Source of the DNA: Selaginella moellendorffii
Lineage: Eukaryota > Plantae > Lycopodiophyta
DNA length: 64,000 nt
Direction of reading: 5' to 3'
Assembly (NCBI RefSeq): GCF_000143415.4
Contig: NW_003314267.1
Coordinates: forward strand, 574,817 to 638,816
Numbering within the stretch: the first letter of the stretch is position 1; every line of letters starts with the position of its first letter. The notes beneath the pieces are model-generated. The model was not told the origin of the DNA. It was given only the letters and a program-made list of their open reading frames with translations, and made no database searches. Below, in pieces: positions 5,993 through 61,270 of the stretch. The translations under genes were made by a program, and so were the position numbers.

Positions 5993-7284
5993 GAACTAAG
6001 TACTTTTTCAGCGATTGCAATGGTGGGAAGCTAGATCCATCCAAGGAGCACACACCAGAGAAACTTTGTGGCAATCCAATAGTTCATGAGCAAGATCCAA
6101 ATGTTCAAATTTCAAAATATGGTTCAAGTTTGGGGCTTTGGGGTCCATGGTTGTTAAGACTGCTTCTAAGGACACTAGCTGCACAGAACTTCAATGGCAA
6201 AGTCCTCTTCTTCCTCATTCACTTGGGGTTTGGAGTTTTGGGGTTTAGAGAGCCAAGCTTCACCTAAGGAGGGTACAACTTGCTTGGCACCATTACAGCT
6301 GGTCATTTGAACATGCAAAGGACACTATTCTCTAACACACACCAAGTCCTTCAAACTACATTGCAACACTTCCCTACCTTCCGATTGCATACCTAGTTCC
6401 AATTGGCAATGGAACAACTTTCAATGGCACACCAAAGTCCCAATTTGTACAATACAACTGTGTTGGCCAATTCCTTTCTTGCCTTGGTTGTGAATTCACC
6501 ATGATCAAAGCACTCGAAGCACCCCACTTAGATGTATGGGATGTTTTGAGGGGCACAATTCATATTAGAGGCTGCATTAAGCTAGCTTGTTGGAGTGCGA
6601 AAACGTTCGGATCCTAGAGGAGTGGCCCACCTTTGGTCATGATTCCTGATGGATAGCACCAAGGGTATGGCTATACTGGTATGAGGCCATGGGATTGGTA
6701 TAGTGGCACTACACTTGCACGGCCTGATGGGAGGCTAGAAACAGCAATCCTAGTTAGAGGGGATCGGTCACACAGCAGTGAGGAGAGGACTTCCAAGCAG
6801 CAATAGCATCACCATTACTGAAGATTGTACATTTCCTCCTCAGTTCACCGCACTATAGGATCCAAAACTATACATCTTTAGGGGCTTTTTATATCTCTGG
6901 GAAACTGTAGGCACCATAAATTAAAAATAATTAAAACTAAAAATAATTTGCAAGGGCAATCACAATCAACTCAAGTCCCTCATATCGATAGACGCAATGA
7001 GGTTGGGGACTATGGATAAGGTACAAAGTTCACCACCACTATGGATAGGGAGCACGTGTTTGTGGAGTGAGTGGTACGGATCTAGGCTACACAGGACTAG
7101 ACTCTAGTTCCTTGATCTGATCTGCATAGAACCGAGCTCTAGTTCCATTAATCCCCCTTTCATCACTACCCCCCATATGCTCTTTTTTGGTTTCAAGCAT
7201 GTCAAAGTTGGACCTCTATGGGTTTTAAGAGGATAAATATGAAAAACTCTATTAGACAAACTTAGACTACTCATTTCACGAGGA

Positions 7285-8456
7285 GGTGCCAAAGTGGACT
7301 GGCAATCGGTCACACTACCCAAGCAAAAAGGAGGACTGAACATAATCAATATTGAGGAACAATAAAAGGCAATCCTTTTCAAGATCCTTATGAGGATGCT
7401 AATGCCAGGCAACCAACCTTGAAGATTGCTACTACAACACTAGTTCCTCAAGGTCCTCTTAGATTGCTAAGAACACACATGACAAGACTACGGACCAAAC
7501 AAATAATGGATGTTCTTAGATGCCAAACTCAAAATGCTAGGTGCCAACACCTTCACAAGGAAGCTTTTCAAGGCTTGGTACCAACTTAAGTCTAAATTAC
7601 AACACAAACAGCCATGGATCAAGGAACATCTAGATCGACAGCCAATTTTCCTTAGCAAATTGTTCTATGTCGAGGGAAAAATACTCGGTGAAATGGAATA
7701 TAGAGGCCTAGACCAAACCTGCAAGGACCTACACAAAGTGGGCTTATGCACGTATATAGAGGTCGATACCATGATCCAAGAGCACCAAACAACCAACAAC
7801 TACGATTGGATCAAAGCCTTCTACAGCCTAGACTTTTTAGAACATAGGATTTGAAAATTCCGAACTGCCTTCTGTAAAGCCCAACGGGTGTGCCTTGAGA
7901 CATTACAAATAATTGACATGTCACTTCATCGATGGTGGAAGCTAAACGACACTATCATTTGCACACTCCCAAGCAAGACCTCTAACCTGATCTTTGAGGT
8001 GGGACATGTGGGATGACTTCTTCCCATCAATACCCCAAAATATGAGGATCTTCTTGATATGACCACTACCCAACCTATCTGTGTCATCCAAATGGAGAAG
8101 AAGACAGGACACATAGACCTAACAATTTTGGAGCAATAGTATGCTAGACTCTATTGGTTCTGCCACCAAATCCTAGACGAACTATAATGGGAGTTGGTGG
8201 AGTGGGAATGGAAGGACACATGCAAGGTGTTCTTTCAATATAAGACCAAGCTCGGCCGATGAATGATCTACCTCCCGATGCATTCTACTTTTATCCAAAA
8301 AGCAAGAGCCTAGCAGATCCCCCCGCCCCCCCAGAACCACCCAAAGTGTGTGAACAGGATTTGGAAAGGCCATTGGTCTACCAAAAATTGCTATCTAATA
8401 TGGCTAACCCAACAAGAATAGCCACCTTTGCAAACTTGTGTTGGAAACATCAATAG
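7285..8456 (+). mobile_element. LINE (L1-like) ORF2 fragment, post-RT region, with stops
   Basis: KVDWQSVTLPKQKGGLNIINIEEQ*KAILFKILMR matches the plant L1 W..V..PK..GGL motif and continues into ORF 7510..7854. Confidence 0.75.
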
Positions 8457-8469
8457 TAACTAGCTATAC

Positions 8470-8830
8470 TAAGGAAATTGCATAACTCTGCTATTGAAGT
8501 TGGTGTAAACTAGTTCTCCACCACAGCCACTGTCCTTGGATCCATTTTGACACCCTTAAATGTCACAATATGGTCTAGATACTCCACCTTTAACTTTGCA
8601 AACTCATATTTCTACTTCTTCACATAAAGTTTACTATCAAACCATCTAGCACCTTAGAATGTGTTTCTATTAGTATCATATAAAAAACACATACTTGAAG
8701 CAACATGTAAAACACCCAAATTTAGCTACCAGCAGAGACATATAATTATAATCCTTAATATCCCTAAGTGGCTTCTCCTTAACATTGATGACAACTTGAA
8801 GCACAACTCTAGTTCTCCTTTAGTGTTTTA
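8470..8830 (-). mobile_element. Ty3/Gypsy reverse transcriptase remnant
   Basis: Minus strand reads KLYVKK*KYEFAKLKVEYLDHIVTFKGVKMDPRTV (cf. KCEF....VEYLGH.V...G...DP.KV). Confidence 0.7.
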
Positions 8831-9599
8831 TATAAGAGAATTGTAGTTGTGGAAAGAGACATGAAGAATTTCTCACTAGGAACTACTCTAGTGACTAGCT
8901 GGGACAGCATCAATCTCACAGCCGACCTAGAGGTGTTTACACAAAATCAAGAGTTCAAAGTCATCCACTGCAGGTAAAATGAACACCTTCAAAAAAGCTT
9001 GCCTAGCCATGGCAGTATGGCTACCATTGTGAGAGCCAACTTGTCACATGTTGAAACCCAATGTAGAACCTGAAAAACCTGAGAGTTTTTCCTTCCTCGA
9101 CTTTATTTGCTATGTCTCTAAAGAGCTAGATGCTATTAGCTAAAGCACTCTCAAGCTTCTCTGCAGAAAGGAGAAAGAACTAATGTACAGCTTTCTGGAT
9201 CATGCTGTGTTAGTCACTCCTCTCCGGCTTGGGTGGAGTGAGCTCACACCTGGAGCTCTTGGGTCTCCATCTTTGGTGCTGGGTGGCCACTGACCACCAA
9301 AACATTCCAGTGCCACAAAGATCCCACAAGGATCCTCTCTCTACAATTGCCTCTTCTTGTTGAGGAAGAAAAACTTGCCTGAAGAAACTCCTAGCAATCA
9401 TCAAGCTCCTCGCTTGCATTCCCAAACCCTAGACACATCCTCCTCCCCAAGTTGCATTTTGAGCACATATCTTCCTCCTCCACAGCCATCACCAGCCCTG
9501 CCACGCATGATCCCCTCTCCTACTTATTGCCTAGCATATGCTGCCCAGTTAGCAAGCACTATTTTGATTATCATAGTATCAAACATTAGCATCATTATT

Positions 9600-10792
9600 T
9601 GCGGTTATTCAAGGCAAGTGTTTGAGAAAACCCAGTGAAGAATCTTGTCAGCTGGAATGTTGCTATTGCAGCAATTGCCACAGCTAGGGAGCTGGAGGAG
9701 GCATGGCAATTATTTGATGGGATGCCTTTTTACAGTCTCATGTCATGGACAACAATGATCACTACATATGCAGATTGTGGAATGGTTGATGAAACAAAAA
9801 ATTAGTTTCTTGCACTGGCGCACAGAGACGTCATCTGCTGGAAGGTAATGCTTTTGTGCTATGCCCAAACCTGGCATCTGAAAGAAGCCATTGCCCTCTT
9901 CAATGAGATGCCAAAGCAAGATGTTTCGTTGTATAAAACTATGATATCAGTTTTGCCATCAAGAAATTATTTAGAAAATGTGAAGGATCTATTTGATACT
10001 ATGCCATTATGAACTATAGCCGCTTGGAACTTTCTGATTATGGCAAATGCTGAGAATGGGCAAAGTGAAAAAGGTGGCCATTGTTTTCTTTGAGATGCCT
10101 GAGTGGGACTGCTGCTCATGGAACAGCCTCTTGGGTGCGATTGCGGAGTCTAGGAGGATTGATGATGCAATCGTGATGTTTCAGAGAATCCCTTTCAAAG
10201 ACACAGTTTCATGGAACCTGATGATTGTGGCAATAGGTTCCCGCGGCCATATCCACGAGGTGCAAGCTCTCTTTGCTGTGATGCCACAGAGAAACATTGT
10301 CTCATGGAGCACAATGATCAGAGCTTGTGAGCAGTAGGGACTGGCTGTGGACACAAAGATTGTGTTTGATTCCATGGAGTCTCAAGACACGGTCTCGTGG
10401 AATTCACTTCTGGCAGCTTACCTTGCGAGCGATTGAGTGGGTGATGCTAGAAAAGTGTTTGATTCCATACGTGATTGAGATGCGGTGTCATGGACATCGA
10501 TGATCTCCACCCACACTGCACGGGGCCAGATGTGCGCTCTTCGATTCCATGCCATGGTGAGTTGTGGTGTGTGGAATGCAATCATCTCCGGCTACACAAG
10601 GAGCAGCAATCTAGATGAGGCACAGCTTTCCTTTGGTCAGATGCCCCATTGCAACACTATGACAATCAATGCCATGGTTGCAAAGCTTGCATTTGGTGGT
10701 AGGATTCAAGACCTACAGTCCGGGAGGATTGAGGAAGCCAGGGCACTGTTTGATCACTTGAGCCTGGAGAATTGGGACAATCAGAGCAAGAT
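9600..10792 (+). pseudogene. PPR pseudogene A, 5' part (cut at the inversion breakpoint)
   Basis: Repeated VSWN/SWT..I..F..MP motifs (ORFs 10047..10337 and 10485..10802) with stops and frameshifts. Confidence 0.85.
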
Positions 10793-13586
10793 TTCTTTGT
10801 AACGAAGCTTACGGGCCATGCTTCTTCGTGGTGGAAGAACTACATCAAAGCTAATCTGAAGCCAACTTCTTAGACTGATTTGACAAAGGTTTTCTGTGCT
10901 TTATTTGTCAAGAATTTTGAAGAGGTTGATCTCATGAATCAGTTGTTAGAGATCCGGCAGGGGACTTTGTCTTTGGATGTGTATGCCCGCAAGTTCCATG
11001 ATCTTTGCCTTAGTCTCACAGGCACCTATAATGAGCTGCTAAAGGTGCAATGTTTTATTAAAGGATTGAACTTGGTGGATGTGTAACAGAAGGTCAAGAA
11101 GGATTTTCCAGCAACATTGACTGATGCTATCACTAAAGCTCAGATATTTTCGCCCGAACCATCAGTCAACTCGGTCAACTCTGGTGGTCTACGGGGTGGT
11201 CAACGTGATGACCAGCTCACCAATGCCTCATATTCGGGGAAGAAACAGCCATTGTTCCATTGTGGCTCAAAAAATGAAGATGGCAGTGAGGCTATGAAAC
11301 TTTGTTTGGACCAGCGAGAGAAAGACAAAGCAGAAGGCAATTGTTTTCGTTGCCATAGGGTTGGACATCAGAGCAAGGATTGTTTTGAAGGGGTCAATGA
11401 ATGATAAGGTGACTGTGGTGGAAATTATAGGCAATGATGTCAGTGATAGTGCTTTTGGGGCCGTATTGTTTCAAGTTAGGCATTCTCTCGCATTCATGAG
11501 TCACAAGTTTGATGCCACACAACAGAATTGACGTACTCGAGAATAGTGACATTCTCTATATAGATCGGACTTCCATGTGGATTCAAACCATTAGTCTCTC
11601 CAATATTTCAGTCGACAAAAGGATCTTCGAGGCCGCTTTGCTCGTTGGCAAGAGTTCATGCAGGAAATATCTGTTAAGATCTGGTACAAGCATGGAGGTG
11701 ACAATAAGGTGGCTGATGTGTTATCTAGGATGGTAAATTCTATCTCGTTCGTGAAGCTATCCAACGATCTCTTGGATGAGCTTAAGGAGTTTGTTGACTT
11801 CGACTCCTTTATCACTGATATTCGCGCGAAGGTTTTGTTGAGGGATGCTTCTACAGATTTGAAGGGTGACAAATTTACATCATTCAAAATAGAAGATGGA
11901 ATCCTGGTGAAGAAGGGACTTGTAGTGGTTCCTCGTGTTGACAAACTCATCAAACGGATTTTGGTTGAGTGTCATGATGTGCCAAGTGCTGGGCATCCGG
12001 GGGTATTGAGAATGTATATGTTGGTGAAGAGGCATTTCTTTTGGCCTGGGATGAAGTCAGATGTTGAAAAGTACATATGTGGTTGCTTGACCTACCAAGC
12101 GGTCAAAGTTGACTGGCCTCTATCATCCTTTACGTGTACCTAAGAATAAGTGGGATAGCATATTGATGGACTTTATCACTGGTTTGCCCAAAACTTTTCG
12201 AAGAAATAATGCTATTTGGGTTGTTGTGGATCATTTGACAAAGATAGCTCACTTCTTCTCTGTGAAGACAACGATAAAAGCTTCTGAACTTGCTTAGTTG
12301 TTTGTAGACCAATTATTTAGTCTTTATGGTTTGCCGGGTGACATTGTGAGTGATCGGGATCCTAAGTTCACGTCCAAGTTTTGGCAAACGGTCTTTGAGA
12401 AGGTAGAGACTAAGCTGAGCATGAGTAGTGGTGAGCATCCAGCAGACAAAGCGCATGAATCAACTATTAGAAGATATGCTACGGTCTTTTGTGGGAAACT
12501 TGACTCGATAGGAAGTATGGGAAAAATACTTGCCTTTGCTTCAGTTTGCTCACAATAGTGCTCATCAATCAGCTATTGGCATGTCTCCTTTTATGGCAAT
12601 GTATGGCTATGAGCCTAGGTCTCCTATGAGTTTGAATTTGGCTTTGGTTCGGGTTCCTCATGCTTGTGATTTCCTGGAGGATATGCAAGACAAGCTTGAG
12701 TTGACAAAATTGAACATGAGGCAAGCTCAAGAACGAGACAAAAGATTGGCTGATGAGCATTGTCGTCATCAAGAGTACAAAGTTGGTGACAAGGTTTTCC
12801 TTAAGCTGTTAGATGCACAACGGTCTTTGAAAGGAGGTGGCAGTGCTAAGTTGTCTCCACGGTATTGTGGGCTTTTGACAATTTTACAGCGTGTGGGGGA
12901 TCTTGCATACACTTTAGACTTGCTAGTTAATTTGAAGATTCATCCAACGTTCCATGTGAGCAAGCTTAAAGTGTGTTTGCACTTTGGTGATATCGTGGAT
13001 CAGTCCATCATCCAGGTTCCAGAGATTGATGCAGAGAAGGCTGGTCTGGCCAATATTCTTGCTCAAAGATTGGTGAAAACACGCCGGAAGACAACTAGGG
13101 AGTCGTTAGTTCAGTGGAATGGTTATTCCATGGACGAAGCTACATGGGAAATTGAGGATGACATGAAGAGAGTGTTTCTGAGTTTTGGTTATGACTTGGA
13201 TGACATTTTTGAGGAAGGGGAGAATTGAGTTTTATAGCCGTATTGCTATATGATTTGAGCTATTTGTTCTATTCTTGTTCTCTTGTTTCCATGACTGTAT
13301 TGTTATGTGAGAAAGCTGTATTGCTTTCTTTCTTTCATGACTGTTTGTCACAATGTTGGTGTTGCTGTTTGCACATCTTTTCTCCATGGCCGTATTGCAT
13401 TAGACTCCTTTCATGTGAGGCTATTTAGCTTCTCGAGGCTACTGTATGTGGCTGGGTCATGAAGGAGGGGAAAATGACACAAACCACAAGAATATTCCAA
13501 GAATATTCTATGGCCTGTGGGATTTAAGGCCATAACGCCTTAAGGGTTGGGAGGTTGGCCTAGGGTTCGCTCTCTTGTTCATTTCA
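10793..13586 (+). mobile_element. Gypsy/chromovirus LTR element, 3' part: gag, RNase H, integrase, chromodomain, PPT and 3' LTR; protease and RT deleted
   Basis: Contains KLTGHASSWW gag, a CFRCHRVGHQSKDC zinc knuckle and DVSDSAFGAVL RNase H. Integrase motifs are HDVPSAGHPG, MDFITGLP, IVSDRDPKFTS and HPTFHVSKLK, and the chromodomain reads LVQWNGYSMDEATWE. PPT GAAGGAGGGGAAAA at 13461-13474. Confidence 0.92.
13475..13586 (+). repeat. 112-bp 3' LTR (TG...CA) followed by TSD CTACA
   Basis: About 10 mismatches to the reverse complement of 19200-19311; directly follows the PPT. Confidence 0.92.
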
Positions 13587-15326
13587 CTACATCATGGAAT
13601 CAATTCTTGTGGAATGCCATGCTCTCTACCTTCGCATCAAACAGCCATCTTGACCATGCAAAGCTGTTGTTTGATCTAATGCCCGAATGGGATGTTGCTT
13701 CATGGTCGATCATGATCACTGCCTTCTCCAGGCATGGCTTACTCCTACAGTCAAAAGAAGTTTTCAATTCCATGAGAGAGAGAGGCCTTGTAGCATGGAA
13801 TGCAATGATCTTAGCATATGAGACAAACAGGCATTTGGATAAAGCAATGCAGCTCTTTGAGCTTATGCAGAAAGGAGCTTAATCTCTTGATCCATAATTC
13901 TATCCAAATCCACCAACTTCTTTTAAATAACGACACTCTTCAGCTCCATGCCTGAGAGAGATCTTGTTGCTTGGAACTCTCAGCTATCAGCACTTGGCCA
14001 AGCTGGGCATTTGCAGGAGGCGAAGGACATCTTCTCCAACATGCCAAAATTTGATGCTCTGTCTTTTACGTCCATGATTCAGTGCTTTGGCCAGCACGGC
14101 CTTTTGGAAGATGCCAAGTATTTCTTCCTCGCACTGCCTCACAAGGATTTGGTTGCCTGCACGGTTTTTCTTGTTGTCTTGGTGGAAAGTGGCTGCTTTC
14201 ACAAGGCAAAGAATCTGTTTGAGTCGATTGAGTGTATAGATGTGGTTTCATGCGCGGTAATCCTGTCCGCTTACGCAGATCACAACGACAGTAGCATCGC
14301 TGAGGCTGAGCAAATCTTTTACACCATGCAGCGCCACAACACGTTTGCTTGCACTGCAATCCTGCGCTTGTATTCTCGGCAAGGACAGACTCACGACGCC
14401 GAAGCCATATATTTAGGTCTGCCTGATCAAGGCGAGCATTTAGTCCCGGCAACCGCTCTCATTACAGCATATGCTTGCAATGGGCATCTGAAAAAAGTAC
14501 AGAAACTCTTTGATGGAATGAAGGAGCGAAACGAGGTTACGTGGACTGCCATGCCGACAGGATATGTAAACAACCACAGGCTAGAGGACGCCCTGTGGAA
14601 TTTTGAGAAAATGCCGGGTCACAGCGAGATACCAGTGATTGTGCTCATGTCGGGGTATGCCCGAAGTGGACATATGCTTTTTGCTAAGAGAATTTTTGAC
14701 AACTCCAGTGAAAAGAGTGCTATTGCTTTCAATGCTCTCTTGTCTGGTTTTTCATCAAATTCGCAGTTACTGGAAGCCAAAAGTGTGTTCGATTCAATCC
14801 AAGAAAGAAATCAATCTTCATGGAGTGCAATGCTTTCTGCATATACCCAAAACGGGCATCTGGATATGGCAAATCGGATGTTCTTAACAATGCCGGACAA
14901 GGATTTCATATCTTGCTGGCAGCATACTCTTGGATTGGGGCCATTTCCAGAGCCTTGGATGCCTTTCAAACCATGGTCACTACTAATACACCTGATGAAG
15001 CTAGGTTAACAGCTTTGCCCACGTCATGTGCTCACAAAGGCACTGCTGCCATAGCTTGGGATCTCTTTGTGTCTTTCCAGTTTGATCACTCCATCAAACC
15101 CTCAAAGCAGCACTACTCGTGTATGATTGGTGTGCTTGTCTGGTCAGGGTATATCCAAGACGCTGAGAATCTTCTGTGGGAGATGCCATACTACCCAGAT
15201 TCCATGCATTGGAAGTGCTTGCTTGGAGCTGTAGTGAGTGGAGATGCAATGAAAAATGCCATTAGTGTGGAGCCTAGTAACAGTGCTGCATATGTTCTTA
15301 TTGCCAATTCTCACATAGTTACATAG
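13587..15326 (+). pseudogene. PPR (PLS-E type) pseudogene B, 3' part
   Basis: ORFs 13547..13882, 13948..15009 and 14820..15326 carry tandem PPR motifs and an E-domain-like end (HYSCMIGVL...W.CLLGA...AAYVLIAN). A 10-nt deletion near 14913 relative to the copy at ~21550 causes a frameshift. Confidence 0.88.
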
Positions 15327-15388
15327 CTTAGATATTTTCAAGAGATTATATCAATTTTTACAACTATATCAAATTTTCTTACAAGGTG

Positions 15389-15830
15389 TCATGGTTTTTG
15401 TTGGCTATTTGATCGGCATTTATACCCATGGAATCCATATGGAACTCCAGCAGGCAACTCTAGAAAAGCCACTGTCTCAAGCGTGGGCGATTTGGCATCT
15501 ATGACCAAAAGCTCCAAGACACCATTTTTCTCATCATGGATGTAGCTTAAGACGTATCCATCACCTTCCTCCTCGCCATTCGCCACAAAACTTACCACGT
15601 TTGAATCTCCTTGATGCCACAATGCACAGCTCCTTGAGGTCCAGGTCACTTGTTCTGTCAATTACCACACTGGACAGCCGTGGAGCGTCCAGATCAACCT
15701 TGGCCAGGCCCGAGAATTTGGGCCATGGCCCATAGTTGTAGATGTACCGGTTCTTCTGCCCCAGGAGTTTCTGGTTGATCTTTCCAAAATCCAGTCCCAC
15801 CAAGCACACATGTTGCTTCCACGACCGAGA
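15389..15830 (-). pseudogene. Carotenoid cleavage dioxygenase (CCD4/NCED-like) C-terminal fragment
   Basis: GKINQKLLGQKNRYIY, PWPKFSGLAKVDL, EGDGYVLSYIHDE and LPAGVPYGFHG occur in two frames; the N-terminal part is absent. Confidence 0.85.
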
Positions 15831-15867
15831 TTGAGATAGTTATCCTTACCTCAAAACCAAATTTTAA

Positions 15868-16310
15868 GAGTGGTTGTACAAGTGATTGTTGTGTGGCTTG
15901 CTGCTTGGATAATTTCTGGGGGATTTCACTTTGTAAGTGAATTCAATATAACCAATAGTCATGTAGAACAGTGTGTCCTTGGAAAGTCTGAACGTTCTTA
16001 GTTTTGAAGTGTGGCAGGACTAGATTCTTAGTTGCGGGGAAAAAATTCTCTCCATAATTTATATGGATCTATGCTTAGAACTAATGTTAAGAAAACATAA
16101 TATGTGATTCCCACAGGCAAAGCTTTTGTACCAGTGTGACATCACGGTTTGAAGAATCTGTACCGATCATGATCGCATATTAATTTACAGCCCCACTTTC
16201 GACATGCATCCCATAGCTGCAAAGACGATGGTGGTGTAGGTCAAGACACTAATCTCCGAATTGATGATTGTTTCTACAACTCTCAAGGCACTAGCCAAGA
16301 TTGCATCAAC
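15868..16310 (+). pseudogene. Degenerate second copy of the CVNH-like gene
   Basis: Shares LKCGRT and CKDDGGVGQDTNLRIDDCFYNSQGTSQDC with 19533-19922; has deletions and frameshifts. Confidence 0.7.
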
Positions 16311-16344
16311 AGATATGCTTTTTTTCTCATAGAGAGCAATGTAT

Positions 16345-17493
16345 GGTCAAGAGGTTTTATTGGATGGAATAAAAAAGTGTAGCAATCTATCTGCAGCTTG
16401 TAAGCTTCACAATGAGATCAAGCACGTCGTTGTGGCAGGAGATTCTTTGGCATCCAATTTTCTGGTGCAAATGTATGGGAGGTGTGGATGACCCGAGGCA
16501 GCATGGCAAGTATCTAGATCGAGGAGTGGAATGCCATGCCACATCAAACAGCCATCTTGACCAAGAAAAGCAGTTGTTTGATCGAATGGGACCTTGCTTC
16601 ATGGTCGATCATGATCATGTTAGAGGTAGAGATGATGTGGCATGTAGTTATGCCCACGTGGCAGTAGTTCCATGTATATGTACCATCTATATACAGTTGA
16701 ATATAGAGAGAGAGAAAGTTCTTGTTCCTCATGTGCATCTCTCCATTGCTAACATGGTATCTAAGCAATTGGCTCCTTGATTTTGGGCATGGCGCTTGCT
16801 GGCCAAGAGGCCAGTGACGAGGAGGAGGATGAGCCTCTTGATTGCAATCCCTTTTTGCAATGCTTGAAGCTTTTTTTGGATGTGCTAGATGCTTGAGGCA
16901 TTGCATCAAGGCACTAGGCCGTGTAGAGGCGTTGAGCAGCAAGCAGTAGCAAGTAGAGCATAAAGCCAGTGGGAGATTGAGAGATTTCAGCAACCCACAT
17001 CAAAAATTGGATCAAGCAAGATTCAAGAACATTGCATAACAGCAATTGGGAAGGATGCTTATGGAGATTCAAGTGCTTGGTAGCAGTAGAAGTGGGAGCC
17101 TGGCAGTTCATAGCCAAGACCACATGCTAGTGGCAAGATTGAAGCCATAGCAAGGAGCAAAGAGTGTGCAAGCAAGTTCAAGACCAAGAACCAAATTTTG
17201 GGTTGATTGATGAGTTTTTCATATGCTTTTCTCATCAACTCTCCATGCTCATCATCTCAGACTAGCTAGGCACGATTAGATTCAGGCTCGGATCAGCCGC
17301 CTGATCGTGAGTGGGAGTGTTAAAGGTAGACATGATGTGGCATGTAGTTATGCCCATGTGGCAGTAGTTCCATGTATATGTACCAGTTGAATACAGAGAG
17401 AGAGAAAGTTCTTCCTCCTCATGCGCATCTCTCTACTGCTAACAGATCATTGCCTTCCCTTGGCATGGCTTACTACTGTTTTTTATTCCATGA

Positions 17494-17527
<34 letters not shown>

Positions 17528-18237
17528 CAGAGAGGCTGAAATACAATGATAGTATGCCACAAACAGGCATTTGGATAAAGAAATGCATCTTTGAGCTTAT
17601 GCCAGAAAGGAGCTAATCTCTTAGACCACAATTCTATCAAAGACAACCAACATATGCCAATTAAGGACTCTGTTTATGCCGAGAGATCTTGTTTCTTGGA
17701 ACTCTCATCTAGCAGCAACTGCCCAAGCTGGGCATTTGCAGGAAGTGAAGAACATCTTTTCCAACATGCCAGAGTTTGCTCCTCTGTCGTTCATGCCCAG
17801 TGCTTTGGCCACCCTCATAAGGATTTGGTTGTGTCCATTTCTTTTCTTGTCATCTTGGTGGAAAGTGGCTGCTTCACAAGTCCATTGTCTTGTGCTGTGC
17901 TTGCACAGATCACGACGACAGTCGAGGCTGAGCAGAATTTTTACAGCATGCAGTGTTTATGCTGCAGTTGTATTCTCAAGAATTGACTCATGACACTGAA
18001 GCCATATATTTAGGTCTGCCTGATCAAGGCAATCATTTAGTTTGGGAACATCTAAAGAATCTCTTTGATGAATGATGAGACAAGGTTACGTGGACTGCCA
18101 TGCTGACAGGGTATGTTAACTACCAGAAGTTGGAGGAAGTGTTCGAAACAATGCCAATCACAGCGTGATAGCAGATTGTGCTCTTGCCCGAAATGGACGT
18201 ATGCTTTTTGCGAAGAGAATGTTTGACAACTCCAATG
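16345..18237 (+). pseudogene. PPR pseudogene C (deleted paralogue of B, interrupted by a TRIM-like element)
   Basis: NFLVQMYGRCG*PEAAWQ, then blocks colinear with 13610-14710. Confidence 0.8.
16618..17444 (+). mobile_element. 827-bp non-autonomous miniature LTR retrotransposon (TRIM-like, copia-type ends)
   Basis: LTRs at 16618-16754 and 17318-17444 (TGTTA...TAACA). PBS TGGTATCTAAGC at 16755 and PPT GAGTGGGAG at 17309-17317. TSD GATCA at 16613-16617 and 17445-17449. Confidence 0.93.
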
Positions 18238-18239
18238 TT

Positions 18240-18392
18240 CTTGAATATGCTATCATAATAAGGAGGGAGTGCTGAACTTTCTGGGCTGGCGGATCCAGCC
18301 AATGGCAGCTGTCCAATAGGGGGTAATTGTAAAAGGGTTATTTCTTTAACCATGTCTTAGTGAATAATTGTGTTGATGTTTGCTCCTAGCCA
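18240..18392 (+). mobile_element. Possible copia-type 3' end remnant (PPT plus short LTR)
   Basis: AAGGAGGGAG followed by TGCTGAAC...TCCTAGC, lying between two oppositely oriented PPR pieces. Confidence 0.3.
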
Positions 18393-18399
18393 ATGGGAG

Positions 18400-18798
18400 G
18401 CAGCCAAACTGCGTGAGAGAAGAAGGTGTAGCAACATGTGTCACATGCATGTGTTCTGTAGCAGATCTCACTAGAGTTCCAACCCTTATGCTGGAGCTTG
18501 TGGAAAAGATCCAGTGCCAATCAATGCAATTTGAGATTGTGGGCAATGCCAGTCTAGGAGACTAGATTTGGATCTGGCATGGCATGGAAGATCGCAATCA
18601 AGATGGCCGAATTGGATGTAGCTCATGAGGATGGTGTTCAAGGACATTGGTTGCTCTCTCTTGCCCTGGAGAGGAGGATCTTTGTCTTGCGCAAATGCCC
18701 ATTCGAGGCCAATGCTTTGATCATGGCATTGTAGCTCGATTTGGGAGAAGATCTGCCATACCTCCGCAACATCCACGATTTGGGCATATGCATCGATG
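18400..18798 (-). pseudogene. PPR pseudogene A, displaced 3' part
   Basis: IIDAYAQIVDVAEVWQIF and SLNTILMSYIQFGHLD; joins 10792 in frame. Confidence 0.75.
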
Positions 18799-19311
18799 AT
18801 CTTCACCTTATCCTCACAAGGATTGTGAGACCAACAACTTTCCCACAATTCCAACCAAGAATCAACCTCTTGACTATCACAAACATCTGGTGATGACTTC
18901 CATTCCATAATACCATAATCCTTGGCATGCTTGACGTACCAATGGTAATCATAGACATGAGATCGATTCAATCCTTGAGGGTCCATGTGAAGCAAGAAAT
19001 CCTTAATGAGATTGACAGAATCCTTAACCTCCTTTATGTCACTCTAAACTGCAGAAATCTAGCGTTCTTGCCACACAACGACATCATCAAGAGTCTCTTC
19101 CGCATCGTCATAGCTATCATCACTAATGCCATACTCCTCATCAGGATCAATCTCTTGCTCACCTGCCATCCCCAAAAGAACGTGCTGCTCTGATACCAAT
19201 GAGATGATTAAGAGAGCAAACCCTAGGCCAACCTCCCAACCCTTAAGGCATTACGGCCTTAAATCCCACAGGCCATAGAATATTCTTGAAATATTCCTGT
19301 GGTTCATGTCA
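18799..19311 (-). mobile_element. 5' part of the same chromovirus element: 5' LTR (19200-19311), tRNA-iMet PBS (19187-19198) and gag N-terminus
   Basis: Minus strand CTACA|TGACATGAACC...CATCTCA-T-TGGTATCAGAGC, then gag-like VDSWLELWE...EDKVKI. Confidence 0.9.
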
Positions 19312-19475
19312 TGTAGAGCCATGGAAGATTTGCCATGCTGCCTCTGGGCATCCACACCTCCCATACATTTGCACCACCAAATTGCATGCCAAGCTCTTGC
19401 CGCGAGGAGGTGCTCAATCTCATTGTGGAGCTTAGAAGCTGTGGATAGATTGGTTCACTTCTTTATTGCATCCAA
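19312..19475 (-). pseudogene. PPR pseudogene B, 5' part
   Basis: VQMYGRCGCPEAAWQIFHGST continues in frame into SWNQFLWNAML at 13592; paralogous to 16360-16510. Confidence 0.85.
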
Positions 19476-19532
19476 CAAAAGCTCTCAAAAATCTAGTGCT
19501 AATATGGTTCTCTGTAAGAAAAAACCATATAA

Positions 19533-19922
19533 TCATGCACAATCTTGGATGGTTCCTTGGTTGTTGTAGAAACAATCATCAATTCGGAAATTAGTGTCAT
19601 GATCCGCACCACTGTTGTCTTTGCACATCGCATAGTAGACCAACTTTGGGATGGTTTCATTGTTATACAAGTAACCTGTGGGCGTGCATATCTCTAAGAA
19701 ATTTGTCCTGCCACACTTTAAATTCCCATTATCATTGTGGATGTGATTGTCCAAGACCAAATAAATCTGAGATTTTTCAGGGAGACACCATTCTAAATGA
19801 ATATAGATTAGGGTGAATTCAAATATAGGACAAGTAAGTGAGAAATCCCCACACCCAAATGTTTTAGGAATGATCAAAGTAGCAAGCGAGGCAACAATAG
19901 AAACTATCAATTGCACACCCAT
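19533..19922 (-). CDS. Secreted cyanovirin-N homologue (CVNH lectin-like), 129 aa, intronless
   Basis: Hydrophobic N-terminus, then GDFSLTC, LDNHIHNDNGNLK...NFLEIC and AMCK...IDDCFYNNQGTI. These align by eye to cyanovirin-N GKFSQTC, LNSVIENVDGSLK...NFIETC and AECK...LDDHIANIDGTL. Confidence 0.75.
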   Translation of the reverse strand: MGVQLIVSIVASLATLIIPKTFGCGDFSLTCPIFEFTLIYIHLEWCLPEKSQIYLVLDNHIHNDNGNLKCGRTNFLEICTPTGYLYNNETIPKLVYYAMCKDNSGADHDTNFRIDDCFYNNQGTIQDCA

Positions 19923-20064: not shown

Positions 20065-20850
20065 ACAAACATGTTCGAGAACATTAGGGTTGTCAAACAT
20101 TCTCTTTGCAAAAAGCACACATCAATTTCGGGCAAGAGCACAATCTGCTATCATGCTGTGATCAGCATTGCTTCAAACGCTTCCTCCAACTTCTAGTAGT
20201 TAACATACCCTGTCAGCATGGCAGTCCACGTAACCTCGTCTCATCATTCATCAAAGAGATTCTTTAGATGTTGCCGGACTAAATGATCGCCTTGATCAGG
20301 CAGACCTAAATATATGGCTTTAGCGTCATGAGTCTGTTCTTGAGAGCAGGATTGCAGTGCAAGCAAATGCTGCATGCTGTAAAAATTCTTCTCAGCCTCA
20401 ACTGTCGTCATGATCTGCACAAGCACAGCACAAGACAATGGACTCGTGAAGCAGCCACTTTCCGCCAAGATGACAAGAAAAGTAGTGGACACAACCAAAT
20501 CCTTATGAGGGTGGCCAAAGCACTGGGCGTGAATGATAGAGGAGCAAACTTTGGCATGTTGGAAAAGATGTTCTTCACCCTTGCAAATGCCCAGTTTGGG
20601 CAGTTGCTGCTAGATGAGAAATCCAAGAAACAAGATCTTTCGGCATAAACAGAGTCCTTAATTGGCATATGTTGGTTGTTTGTGGTCTAAGAGATTAGCT
20701 CCTTTCCGGCATAAGCTCAAAGATGCATTGCTTTATCCAAATGCCCATTTGTGGCATACTATCATTGCATTCTAGCCTCTCTCTCATTTTTTCAAAAATC
20801 CACAAGGTGTCCTCTAGCCTATGGTTGTTTACATATTCTGTCAACATGGT
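20065..20850 (-). pseudogene. PPR pseudogene D (close copy of 17520-18237)
   Basis: ORF 20408..20668 (MPIKDSVYAERSCF) is near-identical to 17591..17986. Confidence 0.85.
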
Positions 20851-20855
20851 AGTCC

Positions 20856-21180
20856 ACGGAACTAGTATGTCTACATGTGCTACTATGGGCAATGGCCTAA
20901 ATTCTCAAGCCTAGCCAAGGTTTATTTAGACGCTCTTGGTCGACTAATTAGATGGTTTTTACTATTACAAAAATATAATTTTGAAATAGTATATAGACCT
21001 AGAAAATTCTATAAACAAGCCAATTACATAAAGTGTATCATTATAAAAGAGTTACCTAATACTAAAGTAAACAAACTCTCAAATGTTATTTATTTGCAAT
21101 TTCCGAACCTACCACTTGGTTGGAAGATATATAAATCTATCTTTCTATGGGTTCCGTTCCACCCCACTATAACTTGCTAA
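20856..21180 (+). other. Chimeric remnant: CCD fragment fused to a Gypsy RNase H fragment
   Basis: YYGQWPKFSSLAKVYLDA runs directly into GRLIRWFLLLQKYNFEIVYRP. Confidence 0.65.
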
Positions 21181-21319: not shown

Positions 21320-21745
21320 ACAAGCACATTAATCATACATGAGTAGTGCTGCTTTGAGGGTTTGATGAAGTGATCAAACTAGAAAGACACAAAGAGATCT
21401 TGAGCTATGGCAGTAGTGCCTTTATGAGCACATGATGTGAGCAAAGTTGTTAACCTAGCTTCATCAGGTGTATTAGTAGCGACCATGGTTTGAAAGGCAT
21501 CCAAGGCTTTGGAAATGGCCCCAATCCAAGAGTATGCCACCAGCATTGCGTCCCAAGATATGAAATCCTTGTCTGGCATTGTTAAGAATATCTAATTTGC
21601 CATACCCAGATGCTCATTTTGGGTATATGCAGAAAGCATTGCACTCCATGAAGATTGATTTCTTTCTTGGATTGAATCAAACACACTTTGGGCTTCCAGT
21701 AACTGTGAATTTGATGATAAACCAGACAAGAGAGCATTGAAAGCA
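21320..21745 (-). pseudogene. PPR pseudogene E (copy of ~14725-15135)
   Basis: MPDKDFISWDAMLVAYSWIGAISKALDAF is colinear with the end of PPR-B. Confidence 0.85.
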
Positions 21746-22900
21746 AGATGCAAATGGTGAGGGTGATGAAGAGCATGAAGGAGGCGGCTGGGATCTGGAA
21801 TTGCCCCAGATGCCTATATTTTATTTCCATATTCTATGCACTCACAAAATTAAAATCTTATACATCTTTTTATAAATTTACTTATATGAATAAATATAAT
21901 TCTTAAAAATAATTGTGAAATATTTAATATTTATAGATAAAAATATATTTATATCAAAAAAACATTTTTAATTTTTTAATTTAACTTTATAATTTTAATT
22001 ATTTAAAGCCCATCAATTCTTTTTATATTATCAAATTGATAACACTATCACTACTAACATTAGCCCCTCCATGAAGGTTTATTCTTACCTTCACAAGATT
22101 TCCTGTATTATACAATATGAGATAAAAAAGAACTTTTAAAGAGGTTTATAGAAGATGACCATAAATTGTTATTCTTAGTTTAAATTAATTTTATGTTAAA
22201 ACCTTTTACTTGTTATAACTTTTAATATCTTTGAATGTGTAAAAACATTCTAATACTATATATTCCCCTGAAAATATATGTTCTTATGATTAACAACATA
22301 TTTATATATACTTATCATAATAAATATATAATTATGGATGATTATCATCTTTATGTTTGTGTTAATGAATAATAAAGTTATTGATGTTGCAAAAATAAAT
22401 ATTTATAAGATTTATTAAATTTGATACATTTATATCTTTATATTTTTTATAAAGATAAAACTACATTTTGAAAGAGTAAATTTTTTAATATAAATAAATT
22501 ACAAAAAATTATTTTATATATATATATATATAAAGAGAGAGAGAGACACAGACACACATTTACATTATTAGGTATTCATTTGGAGTAATTTTTCTTTAGA
22601 TATTACTATTTTAAAATTTTTTCACAAACATAATTTAATATATTGGGACATTTTTAAAAATTAATTTAGATATGCATTATTTTCTATTTTCAAATACAGC
22701 AAGAAATCTACATATGTAAGGTTTACACATGTAAATATAATTTTTATCATATTATTTAAATGTATGATTGGATATTTTTTAAGGTATAAACTTGCAGAAT
22801 ATTAACTGTAGTGGGCATTAAATGATAAAATACGTTTTAATGAAATAAAATTGGAAATTCATTTGCTTAGTTTTCCTCTAACAAAATTAGTAGAGGGACA

Positions 22901-25273
22901 TCAAGGATGACGCCACGCAGACGCCGTCAAGAGGCACAAGTCTTTCCACCCAAGCTTGAGCGTTCCATTGTCCTCCACCAGAGTGTATCCTTGCAAAGGA
23001 AACATCCCCAGCAACAGCGTCGCCTGTGTGGCTGCATTCCCAGCCAACGAAATCGGCCGAAACCCCGACTGCTTGAGCTGATCCCTCCACTGCTCAAACT
23101 TGACCTCTCCAGTCCGTGCAGGCCCGCCAACCGCCAGTATGTTCTTGATCTCGCAAGACAGCAGCTGCTGCTCCACCATATGCCGATCCGGACTATCCTC
23201 CGGAAAGCTCGCGCCAAGAGAATCAAACAGTGCCGAATAGTAGTGCAGCGCCTCCACGAACCGGTTGAGAAACGATCCCGCGTGGCTCAGATCTTGCTCC
23301 ACCATGGTCACCACCTTTGGCTCCAAAGACCCAAGTAGCTTCAAGGTCTTGGAATCTGACCCGGTCACGTCGTAGAGCGAGTGGTGCAGCCAGTGCACTG
23401 CGAGCGCGTCGCCCTGCCGGACCTTGAGTGTCGCAGCGTCGCAGTGGCCGATCTTGTCCGCCACCGCGAAGAACTCAAAGGGCAGGCCGAGCGAGCTCGC
23501 AAAGTCGGATAGCCTCTTGCCGGTTGCCTCGAGCGCCTCGGCCGAGGTGCCCAGTCCGGTGATCCGGACGTTCGGAGGGCCTCCCGGCCTGGAAGCCAAG
23601 ATGTGGAAGAGCGCCGGCCACTGCAATCCTTGCATGATATCAATGTCGACAATGTGGACGCTTTGCTCGCCCTCGAACGCCTCGAGGATGGCCTGGTTTG
23701 CGGTGAAGTGCGAGAACTTGACGAGAGGGCACATCCCGTTGAAAATCTGGAACGCGGCGGCGATGCTGTGGTTGTAGACGTGGTGAATCCCCGGGAGCGC
23801 GGAGCAAATGCCCAGGCACGAGTTTACCATCCGCGCCGCCATGGCCTCGGCGAAGTAGGCGGCGACGCGCTGGACGGAGCTCCCATATGGCGATGCCAGC
23901 TCCGTGAGCTGGGGCTGGATGAGGTTGGCCTCCTCGAAGTTGTCCGTGGAGATGGCCTCGGCGCACTGGAGAAGGAGCGCCAGGAGCTGCAAGCCGGCAT
24001 CGTCGCTCGTGCCGGCGATGGTGGCGGCACTCGTGGCGGTGGTGGTGGCGGTGGCGGCCCCGCCACCGCTGCCGGCTTGATCGTCTTTCCCCGATGGCTG
24101 GTCCTGCGACTCGGAGGATTTGTCTTTGGAAGAGTTTGTTGGAGAAGGGAGCTGCTGCTTTGCGTGATTCTTGTGCTGCTGCTGGNNNNNNNNNNNNNNN
24201 NNNNNNNNNNNNNNNNNNNNNNNNNNNNNNNNNNNNNNNNNNNNNNNNNNNNNNNNNNNNNNNNNNNNNNNNNNNNNNNNNNNNNATTTCTGGGATGATT
24301 CTAGTGATAACTTGAGACCATCGTGAGGAGGAGGAGGAGGAGCCTGCTGCTCGAATGACTTCCCTTCCATCGCCATTTCCTCCACGCGACTATTCCCACA
24401 GTCTTCCAGACGGTGGGGTACTGTTTCTGGATCCACTCTCGACCGCTTCAAGCTCGGCTGCTCCACAGCCGCGGCCGCGGGATTGACGGAGTGGCCATGA
24501 TGCTTGAGCTGGTTTTGCTGCTGCTGCTTGAGAGAGTGATGACCATGCAACATCTCGTGGTGGTGCCGCAAGCTGATGATCCTCGACTCGATAACCGGAG
24601 CTACGTGAGGATTGCACGGCGAGAGGTTTTCCAGCAGCGACTGCCATATGTGCTCGGCCGGCATGCTCGGAAAGCTGTGAGATATGTCACTCACCATCGT
24701 TTCCAGCCACACTGCAACAGTTCCCTCGTCCATGGACCTGATCTCGTTCATGGAAAATCCTCCTCCTCCAGCCGGCCCGGCCTTGGAATTCATGCTCGAA
24801 TCGAGCTCCATCGACGTGGGAAGTGTTCCCCACTGCTGCTGGCTGGAGTTTCTCCCATCGTTGTAGTGATCTTGTTGGAAGAGGAGACTATTATCTGGCG
24901 CGAACAATTGCGAGCTTGGCGAGCGGAAGAGATTGGCGGCGCTGCTCGACGACCAGCCGGATGGCCCGTGGAGTGATCCCCATAGGCCTGGTGACGCGCC
25001 CTGGAAGAATCCCGGGCTTGGAAGCTGCCATCCCAGAAGTGAAGGAGATGGCGGCAGCTCCATGGTGGACGAGGAGGAAGAAACCCGCGACTGGGAAGAT
25101 GACTTTGATGAGCTTAAAGTCGATGCTCCTGGCTCGTACGACGTCGTGTTCGTCGCTATAAGTGACAGTCCACCATCGCTGGGCGACTCGAAGGAAGAAA
25201 TACCAAAGCTTTGCGAGTTGTGGTGGAGCGTTTCAGTTGCGTGTTGGTGGATCTCGTCACGATCTCCTCCCAT
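22901..25273 (-). CDS. SCR: SCARECROW GRAS transcription factor (spans a 100-N gap in the Q-rich linker)
   Basis: Has [72 protein letters not shown] and [14 protein letters not shown]. Also has the SCR N-terminal PCNP motif. Confidence 0.95.
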
Positions 25274-28200
25274 TGCTCCTCATCTTGGTGATTGGGAGGA
25301 GGCCTCAGCGGCATTCTTCTGTTCATGGGAAAGACTAGGTGAGTAGCGTCCCAAGAAAAGAAAAAGAAGACAAGTGATAAGGGAGAACCATCTACAAATT
25401 CTAAAGCGTTTTCCAAGAGATTATAGGTAGAAAAACTTACGCGTTGCCTTCCGACGTGTGCGTGACAACTCGTTCACTGGGATCGACTGATTGATGACTT
25501 CTATGAAGGCTACAAAGCGATGCTACATAGATTGCTGCTGCTCACAGTGGAAGATAGCAAAGGAAAGAACAGCGCGTTTGTTTGCGCGATCCTTTCAAGC
25601 TATGCCACACACTAGACAGCGAAGAAAGGGAGCGAAGGGCGCGACAAGAGGACGACAAAACAAAAACCAGCCCTTGATTCATATTAATTCCAGCACTGTA
25701 CGGGATGCCAAAACTGTTGAAACGGTACGTGGTTTCTTGCCGTAATACACTACTGTTTTGCCTTTTGCTCTTGAATTTTTATAAACGAAAAAAGAGAGAG
25801 TGAAGAGTATTTCAACCTTCACTCGTTTCAATCCAAGGAAAAGATTTTCATATAGAAAAGCTATATGAATGGGCCAAGTTTTCCCCCCAGTTGATCGACA
25901 AGTTGCCAACTTTTTCTTGCTTCAAGCAATCCACATGGCGCGAAGAGGAGCGATGCAATTTTTTCTTTTGGCAACCACAAGGTCGGCAGCAATGGAAATG
26001 GTAAGCTGTGATTTCTTCGAAATAGTTTTTAAACCTGTCTTAATCAGTGGACACGCTTAGAATGCTCTTCCCCCTGACTCTAGTTTGATTAAAATACGAA
26101 TAGGTTTGAAACATTCGGGTCGGCTCCAAATACAAAACGGTAGCTCTCAAAATAAATAAGTTCTTTTTATATATACACATATATTTCAAAAATGAGCTTG
26201 AGAGGGACTTCCAGTAAATTGCAGGCCTTAGCAGTTGTCTCGAGTTTGGAGGCGGGTTCTCACTGGACAACTATCAAACAGCAAGTATTCTTAAGACTTC
26301 CTCTCCCACCTCCAAATATTTTTGTAAATTTTTATGTTCTGGGTGCATGATTACCACCACCAGGAGGAGAAATTTTTAAACATGGCACTCTATGCAAGCT
26401 TATGTGTGTTTTTTTTTTTTAAATGATAATAATAATGATGGTATATAAATTACTGTTTTTTCTATCTGGTGCCCTGCAAAGATCTGGGGCCCGAGATGAA
26501 CTCGCAATCCAGCAATAGGTTGGAATAAAGGACAGTGGCTACGCTTAGTTAAAAAGTTTTTAGAGCATTTATCTTAATTTATACAAGCGATGCTATTGTC
26601 TTTTGTATGACCCCGGTCATATGGAGACGGATTATCCTGCCATTTGTGATCACGACTGCTCTGGACACACTCGTAAATGCTATTAAGTGCTAAGTAACTC
26701 TCTTTGGATGGATTAAGTTAAGCCTGGATAACATTTGCTCTTCTCTTGTTTGGAGAGATCTGTCATATAGATGGGGCCACAAAATACGCTCTCCAAAACC
26801 AGAGAAAAATCTTGGGTGTTTCTCTTCCTTTTTGACAAGAAAAAAGGCACACAATTTTTAGCTCTTTTCTGTCCCTATTTTTTTCATGCATAGTGGAGTC
26901 GTGGTTGTGTCTGTACTGTAGTGACAAGCAAAGCACTTGACGCGGCAGCCCCTGGCTAGCCGCGTGAGAATACCGAGCAACACAACAAAGAATATAAGAA
27001 TAATAAAAAAAACCATGCAAAATTTTATATATATATCCGTATCACGGTTTCGTAAAAAGATAATCATTTACCTTCGAACTAAACAAAGCAAATACGAAAT
27101 CTATCTCATCCCTGCGCAGGGTTTTACTCCTCGTCTCTAGAAACCAGCACTAGATTCTCACATGAATCCCACGTCCTTGGCTGGTATATATCGATTCGCG
27201 ATGATACATGGAGCTTTCGTTTATGGGGAAGTGTGGTAAAATCCATCCATTTCGGTGGAGAAAGAGAAACGCGATGTAGACGTTGGATCCTCTCAAATCT
27301 ATTCACCCGGTCAGTGCAGGGTACGATGCATCTCGGCCGTTGGAGGCCCACAAGCAGCGGCTGGGATCATCCGGGCTGGAACTACGTGCATACTTTTTTC
27401 CTGTACTTTTTTATATATTCTAATTTTTATTTTTCTCAGAGAGACCATGAAAAGCAGTGCAGCCCAGGCTATAGCAGCAGAGCAGTCTTTCTCCGTTTCC
27501 TCTTGGTAAATGTTTCGCGATTTCTTTAGTTTCCGTGGCTCTTTGAATTTGATCCCTTGAGTAGTTTTATATCTCTGGTGCTGCGTACAAATGCCGTGGC
27601 TGGGCAATTCCGTGGTGGGGCTTAGATTTTGCGCTCAGTGTGCTGCAGCCAGCGAGAAAACGAGGGAATATAAACTGTGAATCTGGTGATGATGGTGCGG
27701 CTGCGCGTCCACCTTTTCTTATGTATAAATTTATCTATATACATGAGCGTGAGGACCAAGAGACAAACTTGTACGACTTCATACAAGTCATGCAGACTTT
27801 TTCTTTCGAAATTTAAGAATGCAAACTTTAGCAAGGGTCATTTTTATTTTGGAAAAGTTCTAGAGCTGACATTGGTTCGTCTTCTTTACAAAACCAACAT
27901 CCTTTGCGAGAGAAAGGCGCTTAACAGTCGTAAAGTTTCTTTCGAAAAGGTGGTGAAACATTTGACAAAGCAGTCAAGCGTCAAGTTTGCACAATGACTC
28001 TCCGGTGTCCATGCTCTCCACACGTCAAGCCGCTCGGCTTGGTGTGCGAGTCTCACGGCCTTCTTCATCCTTACTCTCATCTTGAAATTCCTCCAATCGC
28101 TTGCACCATCACTTGAATTCCCGTATGACATCTTGCTCCATGGAAGACAAGATGCATGGGAGCAAACTCTTGTTAATTCCTCAATCTAATAGTTTAAGCA

Positions 28201-60619: not shown

Positions 60620-61270
60620 ACCACAAAGCGAAACCTAAACCCTCTATATGCCACGTGTCATATGCCATGTATCAAAAGGATAGTGGTGTGGAACCTGAGT
60701 TTCAGGGCCTTGAGCCACTAAACGAAGAAACGGTGCCAAACTCCCAAGCATGGAGCCAAGGAGCAATGGCATTGGAGTACGGAACGACTCCTGAGTGTAT
60801 AGCCCAATGAGCGAAGGAATAGGAGCTTGGAGCAACTTGGAACAGTCCTAAAGCAACCAACATCCCAATGCTAGGACCAACATACAAAACATAGCCAAAC
60901 AGAGTTTGGTGTTATTTCAGCATATCGGTGGCCTAACACAAGGATATGGGCACTCCACCAGCTAGCATGGAATGGAACTTGGGCTTAGACCCAAGCTGAA
61001 CATAGAATAAGGACAGGCATGCAAGTGGGAGCTAGACTATGCCTTAGGTTGGTCAGTTATACCCGACCTACGCACTATCCCTACTATACATTTGGAACCN
61101 NNNNNNNNNNNNNNNNNNNNNNNNNNNNNNNNNNNNNNNNNNNNNNNNNNNNNNNNNNNNNNNNNNNNNNNNNNNNNNNNNNNNNNNNNNNNNNNNNNNT
61201 TGGGAACCCCCCATTTCCCCCCCCCCCCCCCCCCCCCCCTTGAGGAACACACGCTTTGGGCTTTCACCCT
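60620..61270 (-). mobile_element. Opposite-strand piece of the same repeat family, spanning a gap
   Basis: 61200-61270 is the reverse complement of the GGGTGAAAGCCCAAAG...poly-G...GGTTCC segment at 62211-62283. Confidence 0.55.

Follow-up and report, generated by a model that had tools for sequence, protein, structure and literature searches.

An 8.0-kb inversion, resolved to a few bases, probably divides a Ty3/gypsy retrotransposon and a PPR pseudogene in Selaginella moellendorffii

A single long terminal repeat (LTR) retrotransposon of the Ty3/gypsy chromovirus type lies in two oppositely oriented parts within a 64,000-nucleotide stretch of the Selaginella moellendorffii genome (assembly GCF_000143415.4, contig NW_003314267.1, positions 574,817 to 638,816 of the forward strand; this whole stretch is the window, and all coordinates refer to it). 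On the basis of the sequence, we consider it very probable that this arrangement arose by one two-breakpoint inversion of positions 10793-18798, which followed insertion of the retrotransposon into a PPR gene copy (PPR-X) and was sealed by microhomology-assisted end joining, with one breakpoint in the gag region of the element and the other in a second PPR copy (PPR-A). The evidence comes from the ends of the element, from the host sequence flanking it and from the two junctions, all of which lie in the gap-free part of the window (1-24185; N runs occupy 24186-24285 and 61100-61199).

An inverted-repeat search of the window paired 13474-13586 with 19200-19312 (113 nt), and trimming to TG..CA left two 112-bp LTRs, very short for a chromovirus, that are identical at 102 of 112 sites: the 3' LTR at 13475-13586 on the plus strand and the 5' LTR at 19200-19311 on the minus strand. 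Both carry the same target-site duplication (TSD), CTACA, which stands directly after the plus-strand LTR (13587-13591, +) and precedes the minus-strand LTR on its own strand (19312-19316, -, read from 19316 to 19312). A primer-binding site (PBS; TGGTATCAGAGC, 19198-19187, -) begins one base past the 5' LTR, and a polypurine tract (PPT) of 14 nt (GAAGGAGGGGAAAA, 13461-13474, +) abuts the 3' LTR; the PBS is presumably of the usual plant type, which matches the 3' end of tRNA-Met. All of these features, on which the original prediction of an inversion had been built, could be read in the sequence. The 5' and 3' LTRs of an intact insertion cannot stand back to back as these do, and the LTRs and TSD are those expected of an LTR retrotransposon provided that an inversion is allowed for. 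Indeed, flipping 10793-18798 recovered one element with matching TSDs. The LTRs differ by nine transitions and one transversion, a bias expected from deamination of methylated cytosines, and their divergence (Kimura two-parameter distance of about 0.10 by our own arithmetic from 10/112) indicates that the insertion is old, with an age of several million years under the substitution rates usually applied to plants, which are not specific to Selaginella.

The host sequence on either side of the element provides a second line of evidence. When the host flanks were joined on their own (19640 to 19317 on the minus strand, one CTACA, then 13592 onward), they gave an open PPR frame without a stop (...VVQMYGRCGCPEAAWQIFHGSTSWNQFLWNAMLSTFASNSHLDHAKLLFDLMPEWDVASW..., also read as ...VVQMYGRCGCPEAAWQIFHGSTSWNQFLWNAML...), as had been predicted, that is colinear at 83% identity with positions 16200-16617 of a paralogue, PPR-Y (16330-18249, +). 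The 3' part of PPR-X, a pseudogene, is found at 13592-15326 (+; Pfam PPR matches and continuity with 19317 onward across the TSD) and its 5' part at 19317-19500 (-; from the flank join). In the paralogue alignment PPR-Y runs uninterrupted through the CTACA site, where it has CTAGA instead, and thus serves as an internal empty site. These alignments assign both LTRs to a single insertion into PPR-X. It was the insertion itself that split PPR-X, and the inversion merely moved the halves apart; the earlier view that the inversion had split the retrotransposon and two PPR genes stands for the element and for PPR-A, but the PPR copies are pseudogenes and PPR-X was divided beforehand.

The strongest new evidence comes from an external gag protein. 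We searched the two gag halves separately and took their contiguity from the coordinates in the relatives. In tblastn against the window, residues 1-124 of the 331-aa gag XP_024518286.1 (ending ...CEDKVKI) aligned with 19169 to 18798 on the minus strand, with identity collapsing immediately afterwards, and residues 125-331 (DFFVTKLTGHASSWW...) aligned with 10790 to 11401 on the plus strand, so that the two halves adjoin with no residue missing and none repeated; the second match of XP_024532411.1, which reads KIEFF at this place, likewise begins at 10790. This external protein confirms the inversion in the assembled sequence. The C-terminal gag part (10790-11401, +; 86% identity, two in-frame stops) holds a Retrotrans_gag domain (PF03732, E=3.5e-7, 30.8 bits against a cutoff of 24.1; profile positions 2-24 on 10793-10870 and 32-96 on 10880-11086) and a zf-CCHC knuckle at 18.1 bits, under its cutoff. 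The N-terminal part with the PBS (18798-19199, -) also has two in-frame stops; Pfam does not detect this end of gag, and a phmmer search of the full library with a 65-residue piece of it returned two proteins at 92% identity over those 65 aa, the next best match having E=6e-9. Both are S. moellendorffii RefSeq models, XP_024518286.1 and XP_024532411.1. The former, annotated as 'uncharacterized protein LOC112341797', is the gag of this retrotransposon family, and the latter, 'K02A2.6-like', is a polyprotein of the same family.

At the left junction (J1), AAGAT occupies 10788-10792 (+), and its last three nucleotides, GAT (10790-10792), double as gag codon 125. At the right junction (J2), AAGATC occupies 18798-18803 (-), that is, the inverse ATCTT at 18799-18803 together with the C at 18798 that completes gag codon 124. 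The two AAGAT motifs are thus present where they had been placed, at reciprocal junctions. The inversion also created an open chimeric frame of 169 codons (18486-18995, -), in which gag residues from about 60 to 124 are fused in frame to the tail of PPR-A; this frame has no Pfam match and no relative in a word search, and is probably meaningless.

The other side of both junctions lies in PPR-A. Its left (5') part, a frameshifted pseudogene that also contains stops, extends over 9626-10792 (+; Pfam PPR on 9626-9802, 9806-10009, 10038-10334 and 10485-10802) and ends at J1, and its right (3') part is a decayed pseudogene at 18486-18798 (-), recognized by the in-frame join, three ungapped paralogue alignments and a sub-threshold Pfam PPR match. 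When 10792 is connected to 18798 in reverse complement, the sequence reads ...EEARALFDHLSLENWDNQSKI followed in frame by IDAYAQIVDVAEVWQIFSQIE..., which restores NWDNQSKI-IDAYAQ as had been claimed for the flipped segment. In three alignments with PPR repeats elsewhere in the window, no gap falls at the junction (ALFAVMPQRNIVSWSTMIRACEQ, EAKSVFDSIQERNQSSWSAMLSAYTQ and KAKNLFESIECIDVVSCAVILSAYAD..IAEAEQIF), and the Phe-to-Tyr spacing across the join is 18 residues, the same as in the aligned repeats. Ungapped BLOSUM scoring of junction variants from -4 to +4 residues gave 25 without an indel and 26 for -3. PPR-like coding carries on along the minus strand left of J2, including a PPR repeat about 60 nt past the junction in a shifted frame (SSYNAMIKALASNGHL, Pfam E=7e-4, below threshold). 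PPR-A also shows an 8-residue internal duplication (GRIQDLQS-GRIEEA, 10680-10720) that stretches one repeat from 31 to 39 residues, and the junction repeat has lost about 17 nt from its end, near 18740; these changes fit pseudogene decay. The junctions are thereby reciprocal, as in a simple balanced inversion: gag residue 124 meets residue 125 on one side, and PPR-A continues in frame and in repeat register on the other.

The parental sequences at the breakpoints can be reconstructed from what each frame requires. The gag frame requires ATC (18800-18798) and GAT (10790-10792), and the PPR-A frame requires ...AAGAT (10788-10792) and CATCGAT (18798-18792). As GAT (10790-10792) and the C at 18798 are required by both parents, the apparent loss amounts to 4 nt in total, and the parents would have read GTG-AAGATC-GAT-TTC in gag and AGC-AAGATC-ATCGAT-GCA in PPR-A. 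Relative to these, J2 (GTG AAGATC ATCGAT GCA) is seamless, with a microhomology of 1-6 nt (C, up to AAGATC), and J1 (AGC AAGAT TTC) falls 4 nt short of the product of a conservative exchange, with a microhomology of 3 nt (GAT). In the protein-level comparison the flipped gag join accordingly reads KI-FF where the two relatives have KI[D/E]FF; the original statement that gag is restored 1 nt short is correct for the frame, and the deficit against both relatives is 4 nt. Apart from these 4 nt the event was balanced, with no part duplicated. The 5 nt common to the junctions exceed chance, since only 0.57% of random breakpoint pairs in the window share at least 5 nt (P=0.0057), and microhomology of this kind is what end joining would leave. 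Finally, each parent seems to have had the palindrome ATCGAT at its breakpoint site, a possible hint that breakage was not random but favored by a hairpin or a nuclease.

We therefore favor the following history. A Ty3/gypsy chromovirus-type element would have inserted into PPR-X, one copy of a tandem [CVNH - PPR - CCD fragment] array, and would thereby have made the CTACA duplication. Two double-strand breaks would then have occurred later, one inside gag between codons 124 and 125 and the other 8.0 kb away inside the pseudogene PPR-A, and the 8,006-bp segment between them would have been rejoined upside down by microhomology-assisted end joining, using GAT at J1 and C (up to AAGATC) at J2, with loss of the 4 nt. 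The inversion is shown to be the younger event, and it is dated only relative to the insertion; in this respect the predicted order of a microhomology-mediated inversion after insertion is supported, but the loss of 4 nt indicates that it was not a clean crossover within AAGAT. The repair pathway is suggested by the form of the junctions, and the restored repeat suggests that PPR-A was in frame at this site before the break.

Several observations weigh against this history. First, Pfam recognizes no PPR repeat in the right part of PPR-A when it is read in the junction frame, and the restoration of PPR-A rests on motif similarity over about 22 residues and the weak match in the shifted frame; the evidence for this junction is weaker than that for the gag junction. 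Second, the 4-nt accounting assumes Ile-Asp at this position as in XP_024518286.1, the relatives being known as proteins and not as codons. Third, in so decayed an element it is possible that a 4-nt deletion unrelated to the inversion occurred.

Of the other explanations, an assembly artefact, in which the assembler misoriented an 8-kb segment or one rearranged clone dominated the consensus, survives best, and we regard it as unlikely. Although the published S. moellendorffii assembly is a mixture of two haplotypes, each junction sits in unique sequence, in a stretch free of gaps up to the nearest N run at 24186, and misjoins arise at long repeats, whereas a search of the window found no inverted repeat longer than 5-6 nt at the breakpoints and no repeat arm over 10793 or 18798. 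Moreover, junction microhomology combined with a 4-nt loss is a signature of repair and not of assembly. It is still less probable that the segment was turned by a clean reciprocal exchange inside the 5-bp inverted AAGAT, or by a replication template switch using it: the motif at both junctions (at the P value given above) and the seamless J2, with up to 6 nt in common with the deduced PPR-A parent, would suit such an event, but a conservative event loses nothing, yet gag is 4 nt short of both relatives, and J1 would need an extra 4-nt deletion. Truncated retroelement fragments are common in the region, but that a 5'-truncated and a 3'-truncated member of one family landed independently at two sites is barely credible, given that the two pieces complement each other exactly (residues 1-124 and 125-331) and share a TSD, that their outer flanks rebuild one PPR frame matching a paralogue and their inner flanks rebuild PPR-A, and that the 9% LTR difference is as expected of one old insertion. 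Equally negligible is non-allelic homologous recombination between inverted element copies or long inverted repeats, or a transposase- or integrase-mediated rearrangement, as the breakpoints lie inside gag and not at the element ends, no inverted-repeat arm covers either of them, and the PPR-A side of both junctions has no LTR or element sequence, even though inverted PPR paralogues lie nearby.

The inversion is also consistent with the order of the paralogues around the segment. Four pairs of copies that are inverted now become direct when 10793-18798 is flipped, in agreement with the earlier claim that the PPR, CVNH and CCD copies would then be consistently oriented. First, the PPR-Z fragment (20070-20785, -) is 90% identical to PPR-Y 17526-18249, and, second, the PPR-W fragment (21320-21746, -) is 91% identical to the 3' part of PPR-X at 14723-15139, both in inverted orientation. 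Third, a decayed CVNH-like copy, CVNH-Y (15933-16304, +), matches the frame CVNH-X (19536-19922, -; Pfam CVNH E=1e-6), outside the inverted segment, in tblastn at 32% over 130 aa (E=3e-10). Fourth, a C-terminal CCD/RPE65 fragment (fragment 1, 15392-15839, -; PF03055 E=1.4e-14, profile positions 342-465) pairs with a short and weak fragment 2 (20857-20934, +), which matches in tblastn at 65% over 26 aa (E=2e-5) and for which Pfam gave no match on 20875-21180. These pairs form about three colinear blocks and hence are not four independent witnesses. After the flip, 11.3-21.7 kb becomes a tandem array lying entirely on the minus strand except for the two CCD fragments, in the order PPR-W 3' end, CCD fragment 2 (antisense), PPR-Z fragment, CVNH-X, PPR-X with the element, CCD fragment 1 (antisense), CVNH-Y and PPR-Y, with PPR-A converging from the left.

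PPR-Y carries an insertion of its own, an 827-bp TRIM-like miniature LTR element (16618-17444) with direct repeats at its ends (137 and 127 bp, TGTTA..TAACA, about 90% identical), a 5-bp TSD (GATCA) and a PBS-like sequence (TGGTATCTAAGC) directly past the left repeat; its empty site is found in PPR-X at 13700-13720. CVNH-X (cyanovirin-N homology) is an open frame of 129 aa that lies 220 bp from the insertion site of the retrotransposon, just outside the inverted segment. Six open reading frames (ORFs) of the window, CVNH-X among them, had no exact match in the protein collection, and CVNH-X therefore seems to be unannotated. ORFs at 5995-9635 and 22930-27994 gave nothing relevant in Pfam.

The remainder of the retrotransposon (11402-13474, +; Pfam and tblastn) contains a weak RNase H remnant (E=3e-4), an integrase (Integrase_H2C2 E=3e-19, a remnant of the core, and SH3_Tf2-1 E=1.6e-17), a chromodomain at its cutoff (Chromo, 25.1 bits) and the PPT. 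Integrase lies downstream of RNase H and the chromodomain is C-terminal, as expected of chromoviruses. Pfam found neither protease nor reverse transcriptase in the element, and in tblastn residues 209-559 of XP_024532411.1 have no counterpart in it, the gap falling at about 11383-11424. By its domain content the element is a Ty3/gypsy chromovirus copy of 3.3 kb that has suffered an internal deletion and several stops and frameshifts; the lack of protease and reverse transcriptase marks it as deleted, non-autonomous or decayed.

The locus cleanly exemplifies a familiar type of rearrangement and reveals neither a new mechanism nor an evident functional consequence; no function is expected, since the sequences that were cut all belonged to pseudogenes or to a defective element beforehand. 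Its value lies in the transposon and its TSD acting as an internal marker, from which the inversion itself, its direction, its relative age and both breakpoints to within a few bases can be established from one genome. It also records the reshuffling of a tandem [CVNH-PPR-CCD fragment] array in Selaginella, and it affects the annotation of PPR and lectin families, as gene halves now lie 5.7 kb apart on opposite strands. There is a slim chance that the inversion is heterozygous between the haplotypes of the sequenced plant or varies from accession to accession; in that case it would be a polymorphism of recent origin, resolved to the base, and its parental allele would survive. A literature search returned no closely matching precedent.

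Among known systems, the element resembles plant Ty3/gypsy chromoviruses and the models XP_024518286.1 and XP_024532411.1 in its order of gag, CCHC knuckle, RNase H, integrase and chromodomain, in the 5-bp TSD and the PBS of presumed tRNA-Met type, and in the 82-92% protein identity of its gag to the S. moellendorffii models; it differs from such elements in having no protease and reverse transcriptase, in its many stops and frameshifts and in the shortness of its LTRs. With inversions that arise by ectopic recombination between inverted LTR retrotransposons it shares opposed LTRs separated by host DNA. Unlike those inversions, which leave non-matching TSDs, a single element is involved here and the TSD is identical at its two LTRs; the exchange joined gag to a PPR pseudogene over no more than 5-6 nt of similarity. 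Small inversions in which two breaks were healed by end joining, either non-homologous or microhomology-mediated, have been described in plants, Drosophila and humans. The present case is like them in its breakpoints in unique sequence, its reciprocal junctions, its microhomology of 1-6 nt, the apparent loss of a few nucleotides and the absence of long repeats; it does not differ from them in kind, and what sets it apart is that the retrotransposon and its TSD provide a built-in marker of polarity and timing without an outgroup.

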